Source: Bugula neritina
Lineage: Eukaryota > Animalia > Bryozoa
Direction of reading: 5' to 3'
Assembly (NCBI GenBank): GCA_964035545.1
Contig: OZ037766.1
Location: 8,174,722-8,238,721, forward strand
Length of the DNA stretch: 64,000 nucleotides
Positions 7,941 through 51,201 of the stretch are shown piece by piece; the stretch's first letter is position 1, and each line of letters begins with the position of its first letter. A model generated the notes under the pieces. That model did no database searches. It worked only from the letters and a program-made list of their open reading frames with translations, and was not told the origin of the DNA. The position numbers and the translations under genes were made by a program.

Positions 7941-10427
7941 ATGTCCCGAGGAGGTGATTTAGAGTGTAAAGTATATGTTGGCGATTTGCCCAGAGATGCT
8001 TCAGAAAAAGAGTTGGAAAAAGAGTTCAGTTATTATGGAAGGTAAAATTAGTTTATTTCATCACAGTTGTTAGCATATGTTGAAATAACACTTGTTAGCT
8101 CATTTGTAATCATGTATATTCTATTATTGTGATATTTTAGATTGCGTAAAGTTTGGGTAGCTCGTAATCCTCCAGGCTTTGCCTTCATTGAGTTTGAAGA
8201 TCCTCGTGACGCCGATGATGCCATTAAAGCTTTGGATGGACAGTGAGTCATTTTATACTATTTTAGTTGCTGTGATTTCTGTTTTTGCTTTCAAAATGTG
8301 CGATTCATATGAATAGCCTGGTATGTAGGCATGTGTTATTTTAGAACCATGTTTGGAGAACGTATTCGAGTAGAACCTTCATCTGGGAAGAGTAGAGCTA
8401 AACCTTGGCAGAGAGAGAGTAGAGGCTATGGTGGTGGTGGGGGTGGTGGGCGAGGACCCCCTCGCTATGATTCCTACCGAGCACCAGCTCGTCCTGGCCG
8501 ACCATTTGATCCTAGAGATAAATGCTACAAATGCGGCGAGACGGGACATTACGCCTATGATTGTCGAGAGAGCGGCTCTGGTGGCGGAAGGCGCAGATCT
8601 AGGTAAGAAGTGTCTCTCAAACAAAATTAAACCACCTGTTGTAGCTGCTTGGTGGGTTGTTTCAGTATGTAGTAGCTCATCCTTATCTGTGGGCATCTGT
8701 TAAATTTATTAATGTGTACCAGAGAAAAATCTGGAATCATTACATCTTTTTATCAAAGCAAAATATGATTCGGAAGACATCAAGTGGGACCTGAAACATG
8801 TTATTGTAATCCTACAACTTAAGATTGGGTTCTAATGCTAGTGGAGTTCAAAGCTAGTCAAATGAGTCCTATTTGTAAAAAGAAATGCTTACTCCAAAAA
8901 TCAATTTAATAGATATAGTACCAATAGAGAGCCCACATAATTGTGTTTATAGTGCAGTTTCTCTGTAAATGTTGATGTACATATTCACTATAATGCTTTC
9001 AGATATCAAAAAATCAAACTCTTACAACATTCTGAGAGTCAACTAGACTATGTCATCAACCTCCTAATTAGATCTACACTTCCTTTTTTCAACTGATCAG
9101 CATTGAGTCAAAATGTCACCTTTGCTCATCAACAGTTGAGAAACATACGGCATTCGCCTAAAATAAGAGCCGTCAACTCAAATTTGAGCAATTTGTTGCA
9201 ACTAGAGCAGACAATACGGCAGAGTGACTTTCCTTGCCACGCCTCTACTGGCCACACTTGCTCAACCTGCCAGTAGTTGTCTACTCTACTTGAGACATAT
9301 TTACTGTCCTTGATTCTACAATAGAGTGTCATCTAGATTGGCAGCGTGCAGCATGCAACACTTGACGTTCAACTTGTCATCACTTCCTTTCTTCGACAAT
9401 TTGTTGACTTAGGAAGGTAAAACAAAAAGTCTGGTTGAAAATTAGCTGCTCTGTATATTCTAAAACGAGTCTGCACTCGTTTTATTTCAAGTAGAGTAGG
9501 TGTTGATAAATTATGTGCATATCAACATAAAATGTAGTAGAAGTACAGGTATTGTGAGCCCTGCGTGGTCATGACCTCTTATAGTCCTGTTATCATAATA
9601 TTTATGTTTCCCTTTCTCAGAATTAAAAATGTAACATTTAGTTATCTGTTTTCTTGTTTTTTTGCCCCATTTATCAAGTAATGCCAATTAAAGTAGCATG
9701 TTTCCTTACAGGTCTAGATCTAGGTCTAGGTCTCGCTCTCCACGCGATAGACGAAGGAGAAGTTACTCAAGGAGCAAGAGTAGATCTAGGTCCAGAGCTC
9801 GAAGCAATAGAAGGTATATACTCTAGTTGGTCTGCTTTCCTACAGTCAACTAGTCAACATAAGCATTTTGGTTACTTTTAATAAAATATGCTTCCTTGAT
9901 TACAAGTCTGTTAATGCAGTGCTTCAATGTATTAGCTCTAGCTAGCCTTATTGTTGAACAATATGTTCTTTATTTCACCTCTTCAAACTCCTGCTTATAT
10001 TATGGATGTTTTGCCTATTCTATCTCAAAGCATTTTTCAATAAGGTTTTAGCTATTTTCCTTTCTAAATTAAAAATAAAATTATAATTAATTGGGTAAAA
10101 ATGCAATAGTTCCAGCTCTAAAAAGTAAATCACCATGTTTTGTCAGATGAAGGCAGTGGAGTTTTTCTCAAAGTTTAAATCTATTTTGGACTCCTGTCAT
10201 GAAATATTGAATGAAGTTAACATTATAGAATTTGCCCGAAAATCACAATCTTGTAATAGCATTTTTATATTTTGAATATTGTGAGTAATTACTGATGCAT
10301 TGTGGTCATTTGACATACTTCAGTATAATATGCTTTCTTATGAAAGTCTTGATCAATCGAGATTATTTGTGAATACTCTTTGTATTGGATCTTGTGTACT
10401 TGTAGTCGCTCAGGATCTAGAGACTGA
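7941..10427 (+). CDS. SRSF7: SR splicing factor, SRSF7/9G8-like (RRM + CCHC zinc knuckle + RS domain), ~194 aa; 'SR-A'
   Basis: Exons 7941-8041, 8141-8242, 8345-8602, 9712-9813, 10406-10427. [11 protein letters not shown]...[24 protein letters not shown] is typical of SRSF3/7. Knuckle [14 protein letters not shown] (8523-8564). RS tail [29 protein letters not shown]. Confidence 0.93.
9003..9416 (+). other. Candidate poison (PTC) cassette exon of SR-A
   Basis: tttcag acceptor and AAG|GTAAAA donor, in the intron between knuckle and RS exons. In-frame TGA at 9094-9096. Seven TCAAC plus several TCTAC in 414 nt. Confidence 0.7.
10147..10280 (+). other. Candidate second stop-containing cassette or alternative last exon of SR-A
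   Basis: ttttgtcag|A TGA gives an immediate in-frame stop. GTGAGT donor at 10281, upstream of the RS-type last exon at 10406. Confidence 0.4.
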
Positions 10428-11935: not shown

Positions 11936-12032
11936 AGCACCACACTGAGGAAGGCCTTGTTTGTCAAAGTCGGTTACCAGCTGCTACTCAAGCAGTTTTA
12001 ACAAGTTTTTGTTTGTAGCCTACTGCTTCATC

Positions 12033-14475
12033 ATTGATTATTACGGCGAAGACGACCGAAGGCGAAATCGCCGGGAAGATGTCGAATGCAAAGTATATGT
12101 AGGTGACCTAAGTAAAGATGCATCTGAACAGGAGCTGGAGAAAGAGTTTGCTGCTTACGGCAGGTGAGGTGAACTTCAACTTGAAGTTGATATGATCATG
12201 AATGATAATGATGATGATATGGTTTAATTTTACTACTTTTGTTTAATTGTTTGGCACTTGAAATTGTATCACTTTATTGGTAAATCTTAGTTCTGCCATG
12301 ATGATGATCGCTACTAATAATAATATAAAAGTAAAAGACAAAAGTGAAAAGCGATATGTAAAGATGATATTAAATTTAATAATAATTTAAACCAAAGACA
12401 AGTGAAAGTGAAAATCCAATATGAAATTGAATAAATATCAACATCAGTAATACTAATAGTATCACTTTAACTATACGTATTACTATTAGTATTAGTATTA
12501 GTATTACTATTAGTGTTTGGTTATTAGTTAGTGTAACTATAAGTATAAGTATAGTTCATTTAAATATAAAATTCAGTATTCAATTGAAGATGAATAACCA
12601 GGGTTGGGGTAATTGTAATTTGTAATTGATGTATAAAAATGTGATTCTAATAGTAATTAATTACATATCTAATGTAATTGATTTTTGAAATTAATTTAAT
12701 GATTACATGTCAATTACTTCATATTTTTGAATTTTTAAGTCTCATACTTTTCCTACCATTACAATGTCTTCTGTTAAATAACAACTAAACAAGTTCAGAT
12801 TAATTCAATGTAGTATTGTATCACCCTATAAATCAATGTGAAACTAAAGGATGTTCTCCTGTGTCAAAATTGCCCAGGTAGTTGGACTGCAGAAGTGAGA
12901 TTATATATAGCTTGCCTTAATTTTTTTTAATCTAGTATGTTTATATTTATTTTGTTATAGAATTAAGAAAGTTTGGGTCGCCAGAAACCCTCCAGGTTTT
13001 GCATTTGTGGAGTTTGAAGACCCCAGAGATGCGGAGGATGCTATTTCGGGTATGAATGGACAGTAAGTTTTATTGATTATACTTTGTACTATTATACTAA
13101 ACTGCTGTGTTTATTAAATATCATAGTTGTATGCTTGTGTGCAGTATAAGGGTAAATACAGTCATACATTCTAAGTACATTACTTTTATGTAAAGTTTTT
13201 CTGTACAGCTACATGTTAAATATTTGTTTTGAAAGAAGGGGACGTCTGCAATTTATTAGAATAATGTGGTGTTCATTACCAGCTTTCTCGGCTATGGGTA
13301 TATGCAATTTTGAACATGGTCAGTGTTGGTAAAAATTTGAGTTCTCGAATTGTTACTTTTTCAGAGATTTCTGTGGCCAACGTATCAGAGTAGAGCAGGC
13401 CTCTGTTAGACGGTCTGGACGCGGTGGTGGGCGTGGTGGAGGATATAGCCGAGGTCCACCTCGATACGACTCATACAGGGGAGGACGAGATGGCGGCGGT
13501 AGAGGTGGCTATGGCGGCGGTGGTAGAGGAGGCTATGGAAGTGGCGGTAGAGGCGGCTATGGGGGTCGCGGCGGCGGTGGTTACAAATATGGAGAGTCTG
13601 GTAGCTATGGAGGAGGTAGCAGCAGCAGCGGCAGCAGGTATTTTTTGTTCTCTAGTATCTCAAGGTGTTGACTATTTTTTAAATAAATTATTCGTTTAAT
13701 TCACTGGCTTGCATAGAATTAAAACAATATATATTAATTGTTCTTGTTGAGCTTCTAATGAATAAATATAGAATTTGCTTTGTTTAATTCTAACTGGGAT
13801 TTGAGTAAATGATTTGTTTCAGCATGAGCCTTTTTAATTCGTGTTGTCATACTTTTAGGTTGCTAATAGCATGGTTATTACAACTTCTGCTTCATGGGGG
13901 TCATGTTAAGGGCAACTTGCTTATTGGCTGATAAAATATATCTGCTGCCAACTTGAAAGTGCATCTCCAATTTAATTCGGCAATCATCAGCCCATCCAGT
14001 CACTGCATAGTGGACAGATGTAGCCAATGTACATCCGCCAATCAGCCTTGTCTTAATATATCCTACAAGTTCACTTCCTTCAATAGCTTCAGTGTATTGT
14101 ACAACTTGCCCGCCAGCTAGGCTGCTCAGCGTTAAATTACAATTCTGAATTTTCTTCACCTCATAAACTTACACAAAACTGCATCACAACATCTTCACTG
14201 AGTTGTATGTTACTCAATCAGGTTTGTAATGTCTGGTAAAAAATTGAAGTTTTACATTATTTCACTATAATAAAAAATACAATTTCAGTAGAGCTAGTGA
14301 AAATTATTGTAAAAGTCCCAAAGATAATACTGTGAGCTGTGCAATGTTTTATTTGAATCTATGTTTTACCGCATGTTGGAGATTTGATTGAAAGGTTTGT
14401 GTATTTTATAGGAGTTATGGTCGAGACAGACGTCATAGTTATTCTCGTAGCAGGAGCAGGTCACCTGGACATTAA
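12033..14475 (+). CDS. Tandem SRSF3/7-like paralog: RRM + RGG/GY-rich region + degenerate knuckle + short RS tail, ~189 aa if started at ATT 12033; 'SR-B'
   Basis: Exons 12033(?)-12163, 12961-13062, 13365-13637, 14412-14475 (TAA), plus a 3'UTR intron 14487-15140 and AATAAA near 15347. Intron positions and phases match SR-A. RRM is closely similar ([32 protein letters not shown]) and the linker [10 protein letters not shown] is shared. Start codon uncertain. Confidence 0.88.
13859..14221 (+). other. Candidate poison cassette exon of SR-B
   Basis: ttttag acceptor (alternative in-frame acceptor at 13822) and CAG|GTTTGT donor. In-frame TGA at 13929-13931. Enriched in CAACTT/CATC. Same intron as the SR-A cassette. 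Confidence 0.55.
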
Positions 14476-40867: not shown

Positions 40868-48872
<8,005 letters not shown>

Positions 48873-51201
48873 TATACTTGTCTAGTAGTTTAGTCATTGT
48901 TCAATCTTTTGATTTTTGAAATCTACTAGTACTAGTATTTCTTTTTTATTTTCACATTTTAACCGTTCGCCATGACAGTTATCTTCGCTGAATTACGTTA
49001 TCTTCGGCCTACAACGAAAAGATCCTCACTAAAAATTTATTTTGAGACAAGATAACTCCTTAAAACCTTGCGTGTAATCTGAGTTTAGAAATTTACATAC
49101 TATACGTTATGTATACATTATAGCAAAATAAGCGACACAAACATAATATAGTAACAGGGTTTTTTAGTTTTCAATTAATTTTTTTACATTGATTATTCCT
49201 CTTTTTGCTTTCAAACTACTAGCTGTCTATATCACAAAATATAGGTTTGTATAATGTATAGATGTAAGTACTAAGTCAAATCTGAAAAAAATCATTAGCT
49301 GCATGTTGCGCATGATTGCACTCATTTATACCTAATACGTGTGTTGTAGCACAAGCTATACATGTATAAACACCGTAATAAAAAGTCTATCAGTTCAACT
49401 ATATAAACCAGTATAGTTTTATGAAAATTGGATTAATCAGTATTGGTGGTGTGAAAGTATTTTAAACTTCATTTATGATCTTGGATAAATTTATTAACAA
49501 CTTTAGCTTATATAATTATTGTAGTATACGCTTAATGAATAATATGGCGATTAAACTAATTTAAAACAATTTAGTATTGCATCATGCAGGTACCCTGATT
49601 TGTCTAATTAGGCTGCCATTGACCGCAAACTTGAATTATTTTGGAAATTTTCAGTGCACAAAAGATAAAGAGTTATAGTGTCCATCACTGCAATTATAAG
49701 TTTATCAAAATAAAAGATCATGGCAAAACAACTTTTGAGCTAACAGCAACCATTATAAGGAAATTCTGTTTGATTTGTTTTTCTAATATATTCACACATG
49801 AGGTCAGCAATAACAAATGTAGTTATGTGTATACATAATATTATATGCAATAAAATCATTGATCTTCATTTCAAGAGTTGTCATATAGCAAAAAAAACTT
49901 TATGCTGTTGAAAAACATTCTAGCAGCATGAAAAAGCCTACAGGGTAGAAATGTTATAAAAATAGCAAAAGTTTGGAAACATGCTAAGGTAAATCAAGTA
50001 AACACATATATATAACGTCATAGTATAGGTCAACATACAAATTAACCGTAGACATCATTGATGTTATTAGGCAGCCATGTAAAACATGTCAGCTAATTTA
50101 TATAATTATTTGCATAGTTGATATTTTTTTAACCTTTCTGAAGGATGAATAAATTAAATATTGTCTCGACCTGAGCTGCACGCATACTGTGTATATGCCT
50201 CGTGTCAGCTAATTGGATGTCGCTCTCATTTAGGCTTTAACACCCTATTGATTAATTGCACGTAGATCACAGTAGAGTAATGAATAAATTCTTAAATATA
50301 TTGAAAAAAATTGACATGCCAATTAATTGATATTAACCTAAAAAGTACATTGCTTATAAGACGCGAATTTCTCCAGGAAATGCAATGATGTGTGTATAAA
50401 TCTTACTGCATGTTGGTGCTTACAGCTTGGTTGATTGTTTGAATTCATGTTCTTTATGTTTGGCATGATGATGTAGCAGGGTTTAGCTCATGGACAGATT
50501 TCTGTTCACAGTTTAGTAATCTCACCAACAACCGACAGATACAACACAACATGTTAGATAGTGTTTTTCTGTTAATAAAGCAAGTCAATTTGTTTTAATA
50601 ATGTTGCATTTATTGCACAACATAATCTCAAAATTCATTTGTACAGTATAATTGTAAAATATTTACAGCAATAAATATAAAACTGATAAAGCATTTAAAC
50701 AGAAAGGAATATATTGATTATGATACATTTTGAATAGAAAAATATTTTCCATTAGTAAATGGCGTGACTTTTTGCTATGATAGACATAAAAATAATTCTG
50801 ATGACAATATTAGATATATTAAAATAGGCCTTTTATGTTTCAAAATGACTTCTGCAAATAAGCTGTAGGTTGTATTGATTAAAGTATTAGTTGCTTAACA
50901 GCTTTTTAATGATTTACAACACTAAATTAAAGAGTGATATTTTAGTTTGAATTTTAGCAACATACCAGCCAGGTTTAAACATAAAACAATTATGAATGAT
51001 TGATTGTCATTCTGATTCCAAACTATTTAGCATATTTGTTAAAGGAGGGCTACACTAAAATGAATTCTTTAATTTGCTCTAACCGCAAAGATATGACACT
51101 GGTGATCGTAAATGGTTTCCACTGCTTGGTACATTCACCAACATGATGAAGATGAAATTAATTATGATTTTCAGTTTTGAAAGCTTCATCAAGGGCCCAG
51201 T

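Follow-up and report, generated by a model that had tools for sequence, protein, structure and literature searches.

A knuckle-less SRSF7-type gene beside its knuckle-bearing paralogue in Bugula neritina, with a probable remnant of the zinc knuckle

In this study we describe two SRSF7-type genes, here called SR-A and SR-B, that lie head to tail about 4 kb apart in the window, the whole stretch of 64,000 nucleotides of Bugula neritina DNA that was analysed. SR-A carries an intact CCHC zinc knuckle. SR-B is a transcribed, spliced and strongly constrained working gene, whose protein consists of an RRM, an RGG/GY tract and a 20-residue RS tail. From comparison with its relatives, SR-B very probably descends from a gene that bore a knuckle. 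The residues of that knuckle may still be legible: on a balance that is positive but modest, we take the core Y-K-x-G-E-S-G-x-Y at 13582-13608 to be a knuckle remnant, either of the full motif or of its core.

Two neighbouring genes of one type

The DNA of the window is AT-rich (about 32% GC), and the two genes within it are built alike (Table 1): all three introns of SR-A and SR-B sit at matching codon positions, each of them in phase 2. In SR-B the RRM frame is open from 12075 or earlier in exon 1. Among the 91 residues of exon 3 there are 39 Gly, 15 Arg, 12 Ser and 9 Tyr, and no Pfam family matches this exon at E<=10. Its 24-nt tandem array encodes an 8-residue Gly-Arg-Tyr repeat and ends 8 nt upstream of the segment 13579-13620. 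Spliced protein models were built from the coordinates and used for alignment, tree and dN/dS, and sequence searches were run exon by exon.

Table 1. Positions of the features of SR-A and SR-B, counted from the first letter of the window
Feature	Position	Strand	Description	Basis
SR-A	7941..9827	+	exons 7941-8041, 8141-8242, 8345-8602, 9712-9827 (may continue)	splice sites read, translation
SR-A domains			RRM, CCHC knuckle, RS domain	Pfam RRM_1 and zf-CCHC
SR-A intact CCHC zinc knuckle	8523..8564	+		PF00098, 32 bits
SR-B exon 1	11949..12163	+	start is at least 11949	RNA contigs
SR-B exon 2	12961..13062	+	RRM, second half with RNP-1	RNA joints
SR-B exon 3	13365..13637	+	end of the RRM, shared 10-residue motif, RGG/GY tract, then phase-2 donor	
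SR-B 24-nt tandem array	13492..13571	+	about 3.2 copies, 81-85% matches	Tandem Repeats Finder
SR-B segment	13579..13620	+	probable substituted knuckle remnant, core 13582-13608, 0/4 ligands left	
Alternative exon start in SR-B intron 3	13859..13931	+		one low-depth RNA contig, joint 13635>13857 (cut +2)
SR-B exon 4	14412..14475	+	20-residue tail with short RS run, stop 14473-14475	RNA joint 13635>14410 (cut +2)

SR-B has the conserved RNP-2 and RNP-1 blocks of the SRSF7/SRSF3 (9G8/SRp20) RRM subfamily, and the RRM_1 profile matches its exon 1. Its RRM is 74% identical to that of SR-A over 74 aligned positions, and the second exons of the two genes are 79% identical. A 10-residue motif ahead of the spacer is the same, letter for letter, in SR-A, SR-B and P0003. 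An exon-by-exon search of the assembly (216,009,554 bases in 321 contigs) found four genes of this RRM class, namely SR-A, SR-B and the paralogues C and D, and no second knuckle-less member besides SR-B. Paralogue C, on another contig (L003, G000:C7:655424-658654, minus strand), has the full SRSF7 architecture with intron phases as in SR-A and SR-B; the exon-intron structure is the same in these three genes, and in D the first intron is absent. In SR-A, C and D the homologous exon has a perfect CCHC knuckle at its end, with a phase-2 intron coming next, and SR-B alone is without the knuckle. The knuckle is also found in P0002 and P0003, which are relatives from other organisms. A tree of SR-A, SR-B, C, D and P0003 (113 columns) gives no firm branching order and no date for the duplication; the distant D joins the SR-B branch at 74%, a grouping that is possibly due to long-branch attraction. 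Since the outgroup and the sister genes bear a knuckle under every topology, parsimony assigns a knuckle to the ancestor of SR-B.

Two of these relatives have features of their own. Paralogue D (L007, G000:C2:8819983-8823075, minus strand) is distant, with an intact knuckle and an RRM that has no intron inside it, and its long Arg/Ser-rich open frame lies upstream, not downstream, of the RRM. P0003 (L010-L013, JGI metatranscriptome contigs) is an SRSF7-like transcript of another marine organism. Its frame stops precisely where the exon-3 boundary would fall, and the transcript continues for >1 kb; it resembles an isoform with a retained intron or a poison exon.

The segment at 13579-13620

Set against the SR-B segment in the coding frame of exon 3, the knuckle of SR-A (8523-8564) agrees with it at six non-ligand positions and differs by a conservative T/S exchange at another, and in SR-B all four CCHC ligands are replaced (C>G, C>Y, H>S and C>S). 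The sequence-only reading had said as much, and had also counted seven RGG motifs, three of them RGGY, in the preceding region of SR-B; direct reading agrees with it, and a motif count gives the same numbers for SR-B exon 3. It further expected a zf-CCHC profile to find SR-A and to miss SR-B. This was borne out: the Pfam profile (gathering cut-off 20.8 bits) matches exon 3 of SR-A with 32 bits (E 1.2e-7) and gives no match to SR-B at E<=10. The pattern C-x2-C-x4-H-x4-C is likewise present in SR-A, C, D, P0002 and P0003 and absent from SR-B, which has G, Y, S and S in its place. For a second lineage we used Logan contig L009 (10.9 kb), which carries both genes and whose non-coding DNA has diverged from the window by 9-10%. 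Neither this contig nor the DNA and RNA contigs of four runs restore the Cys/His codons; all of them are the same as the window over 13579-13638. SR-B cannot coordinate zinc through this segment.

A further claim, that the segment occupies the same position as the knuckle just before the phase-2 intron, is true only as an approximation. Both exons do end at a phase-2 GT donor, but the distance to the exon end is 6 residues for the segment and 13 for the SR-A knuckle, and the distance downstream of the shared 10-residue motif is 33 residues in SR-B and 14 in SR-A.

Several observations speak for a remnant. In the 53-residue tail of SR-B the best local match of the SR-A knuckle is this very segment, with nine residues and a BLOSUM62 score of 34, a score that has P 0.0007 against shuffled tails and 0.006 against shuffles in which Tyr is held fixed. 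For six or more identities P is 0.001 with full tail shuffles, 0.03-0.04 with Tyr fixed and 0.005 when the shuffling is confined to D, K and E. The single Lys and the single Glu of the tail occupy the Lys and Glu positions of the knuckle, position 7 of the knuckle is Ser in P0002 as it is in SR-B, and both the segment and, in SR-A, the knuckle are found towards the 3' end of the exon. The homology proposed at the outset thus stands in part: the core match beats shuffled sequence, but homology over all 14 positions is no more than likely, as Y2, G5, G8 and Y10 are expected from the 8-residue period as well. The positions that are specific beyond the repeat are K3 and E6 (plus S7).

That the tract alone could have produced the resemblance has to be weighed most seriously. 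The two Tyr of the knuckle stand eight residues apart, which is the repeat period of the SR-B tract, so that an in-register copy of the repeat already accounts for four identities out of six (Y, G, G, Y); indeed three upstream windows of the tract score 4 identities with the knuckle. Hence the knuckle might have been deleted or overwritten by repeat growth, with 13579-13620 made up of two decayed repeat units and linker and with Lys and Glu placed by accident. We regard this as rather unlikely. The two units that follow the array in 24-nt register do show 54% and 62% identity in DNA and 5/8 in protein, the identity test with Tyr fixed lends the remnant little strength, and the match was first spotted by eye, which makes the P values optimistic. 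Alignment programs also place the knuckle elsewhere. Needleman-Wunsch under four gap settings and MAFFT (run twice) set it opposite an upstream repeat, and in the same alignments the ESGS..GGG part of SR-B falls on the post-knuckle linker of SR-A; the alignment as a remnant is therefore not unique. However, a chance origin sits poorly with the scored local match (P 0.0007-0.006) and with a location near the exon end that fits a knuckle. Moreover, the array as delimited by Tandem Repeats Finder stops before the segment, and the first Tyr codon of the segment is TAC, as against TAT in the three Tyr codons of the array.

Two other comparisons are uninformative. At the codon level 22/42 nucleotides are identical between SR-A and SR-B, which says little at the given divergence, and AlphaFold models of single exon-3 peptides have a mean pLDDT of 51 for SR-A and 50 for SR-B, the real knuckle of SR-A being unmodelled as well.

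The placement on the linker leads to a third account, which we hold to be distinctly improbable. Here only the five residues of 13579-13593 would go back to the knuckle, to its first half; the half with His and the last Cys would have been lost in an in-frame deletion of 10 codons, and ESGS.GGG would correspond to the SR-A linker. No other alignment yields as many identities (Y, K and G, followed by E, S, G, S, G, G, G), the SR-A linker opens with the same four residues, and the two Glu codons of SR-A, 30 nt apart and followed by the same base, form a short direct repeat. But the linker match carries no statistical weight, since shuffled tails match a G/S-rich linker no worse (P 0.95), the Ser codons of SR-A and SR-B come from opposite families, and three indels are required. 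On account of the same P value against shuffled tails, the post-knuckle linker was dropped as a rival anchor.

No orthologue of SR-B from another species, and none in an intermediate state, was found, in searches limited by gene callers that on genomic contigs choose another frame of exon 3 and by a length band that excludes full-length kin; the negative results are thus no sign that orthologues are absent. In a word search with the open frame around SR-B exon 3, low-complexity candidates swamped the result and no match was obtained; with the non-repetitive 40 residues of the exon it gave 9 candidates and 0 matches. In a phmmer search of 1.84 billion representatives there were 0 matches, SR-B itself included, so that the SR-B frame lies outside that library, and two scans of JGI metagenome contigs confirmed nothing for SR-B.

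Expression and constraint of SR-B

Exons 1, 2 and 3 of SR-B are joined by an RNA contig of depth 693, and a joint between exons 3 and 4 at GT..AG is present in other RNA contigs. Runs of five studies contain about a fifth of the sampled words, which is roughly the exonic share. Between the window and L009, SR-B differs by 20 synonymous substitutions, 1 that is non-synonymous and an in-frame insertion of one Gly within the repeat, with dS 0.18, dN 0.0025 and omega 0.014; for SR-A omega is 0.043. In the main body of exon 3 the listed substitutions (7/7) are third-position and silent, and therefore the low-complexity tract of SR-B is protein-coding and constrained. The length difference of one Gly lies inside the repeat, and the tract, made in part by tandem duplication, is still length-polymorphic. 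From 13579 up to the donor, 60 nt in all, the two lineages do not differ, which at the given divergence is no more than a weak hint of extra constraint.

These data also bear on the possibility that SR-B is a decaying pseudogene and its 'fossil' knuckle ordinary erosion. Although an in-frame ATG is missing from SR-B (11949-12102) in both the window and the sibling lineage, and the first AUG of the transcript (12079) lies in another frame that meets a stop after 7 codons, we rule this out as extremely improbable on the strength of the omega of 0.014 with 20/21 substitutions synonymous, the sole indel being in frame, the correct splicing of all introns in abundant RNA contigs from several studies and the intact intron phases.

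Some further observations concern the 5' end and the introns. The AUG at 12079 looks like the ancestral start moved out of frame. The 57 nt upstream of 12075 show hardly any change, and when the RRM frame is read on upstream the difference at 12074 is silent; an upstream ATC has become ACC in the sibling lineage, and the next ATT is kept. Within SR-B intron 1, 12524-12900 is a high-copy interspersed repeat: the summed contig depth in run X1 is about 45,000-50,000, and variant contigs and loose ends are numerous. Between SR-B exons 1 and 2 there are 1047 letters in the other haplotype of X1, as against 747.

In SR-B intron 3 (13639-14411) 18/729 bases differ between the lineages (2.5%), far below the dS of 0.18, and RNA contigs cover the intron in large part at lower depth. 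Where exon 3 is joined to 13859, the frame runs for 24 codons and then reaches a stop at 13929-13931. This intron may contain a conserved unproductive-splicing switch, the isoform coming from one low-depth contig and contigs giving no levels.

A possible route and known systems

Where the sequence-only reading saw a folded zinc finger that is being converted into a low-complexity domain, the result can be kept and the process cannot. SR-B is a knuckle-less derivative of an SRSF7-type gene, and its exon 3 encodes an RGG/GY tract; but a segment that is identical in two lineages at dS 0.18, in a gene under strong purifying selection, represents a finished and stable state. The route to that state very probably began with a gene that had a CCHC knuckle in exon 3 and gave rise to SR-B as a paralogue of its neighbour SR-A. 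The proline-rich spacer ahead of the knuckle probably gave way to the RGG/GY tract, enlarged by slippage of the 24-nt unit, and the knuckle itself would have been disabled through ligand substitution and not through clean deletion, its core being left embedded in low-complexity sequence. In the most far-reaching version the conversion happened in place: the four ligands were lost one by one, and the Tyr/Gly/Lys/Glu scaffold was kept under selection as already fitting an RGG/GY tract of the condensate type, which would amount to an order-to-disorder change in a still essential splicing regulator, independent of SRSF3 and RSF1. We put this version forward tentatively and, taken as a whole, consider it doubtful.

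As to function, what is known of the family suggests that the SR-B RRM, being close to that of SR-A, could recognise RNA without a contribution from a knuckle, and that the RGG/GY tract could offer sites for arginine methylation and multivalent extra contacts to RNA or protein. SR-B may act as a co-regulator or competitor of SR-A, as Drosophila RSF1 does for SR proteins, and by analogy the short RS tail makes a modulator or competitor of SR-A more likely than a classical splicing activator.

Loss of the knuckle has been repeated within the SRSF7/SRSF3 subfamily, and the manner of it is seldom visible. Here a knuckle-bearing parent type and a functional knuckle-less derivative stand 4 kb apart with the same gene structure and with a candidate remnant that can be read. 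As such they might serve as a natural pair for separating the share of the knuckle in RNA specificity from the contribution of the RGG/GY tract. If bryozoan orthologues were to show intermediates, this would provide a stepwise record of a transition from a folded to a disordered domain. The general understanding of SR proteins is left unchanged by SR-B.

Among known systems, SRSF7 / 9G8 (Drosophila x16/XL6; plant RSZ) combines the RNP-1 block of the family with a knuckle in the third exon and, beyond a phase-2 intron, an RS domain; SR-A, C and D fit it fully. SR-B has the RRM, the intron positions and the pre-knuckle motif in common with it, but is without ligand Cys/His and without a zf-CCHC match, has an RGG/GY tract where the spacer would be, and ends in an RS tail of 20 residues. 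SRSF3 / SRp20 (Drosophila Rbp1) resembles SR-B in being knuckle-less and in belonging to the same RRM subfamily. In SRSF3 the RRM is followed by a long RS domain and no RGG/GY tract is known, and in both respects it differs from SR-B. In SRSF3 and SRSF7 the intron ahead of the RS exon contains an alternative exon that brings a premature stop; a candidate for such an exon in SR-B is seen in one low-depth RNA contig. Under the strict definition attributed to Manley and Krainer 2010, the RS domain of an SR protein is said to need at least 50 residues and an RS content above 40%. SR-B has 20 residues after exon 3 and one short RS run, and is better called SR-like. Glycine-rich RNA-binding proteins such as CIRBP and the plant GRPs consist of one RRM and an RGG/GY tail. 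They share the overall layout of SR-B, but the RRM subfamily differs, the RRM and the gene structure of SR-B being those of SRSF7.

Knuckle-less members are known in the 9G8/SRp20 subfamily (PMC3173450). Drosophila RSF1 (Rox21) is described in PMC4274639, with reference to Labourier 1999, as having an RRM of the 9G8/SRp20 type and a Gly-Arg-Ser-rich (GRS) domain, with neither a knuckle nor a long RS domain, and an RNA motif that resembles that of XL6; in later work RSF1 was found mostly to co-regulate with SR proteins (PMC4274639). The likeness to SR-B is one of architecture only, both having a domain rich in Gly, Arg and Ser directly after a 9G8-type RRM and no knuckle, whereas the tract of SR-B is of the Gly-Arg-Tyr type and repeats regularly every 8 residues, and a short RS tail is retained. 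In conclusion, SR-B is a further case of a known kind of knuckle loss, and what is particular to it is the adjoining gene of the parent type, the Tyr-rich periodic tract and a candidate remnant that can still be read.
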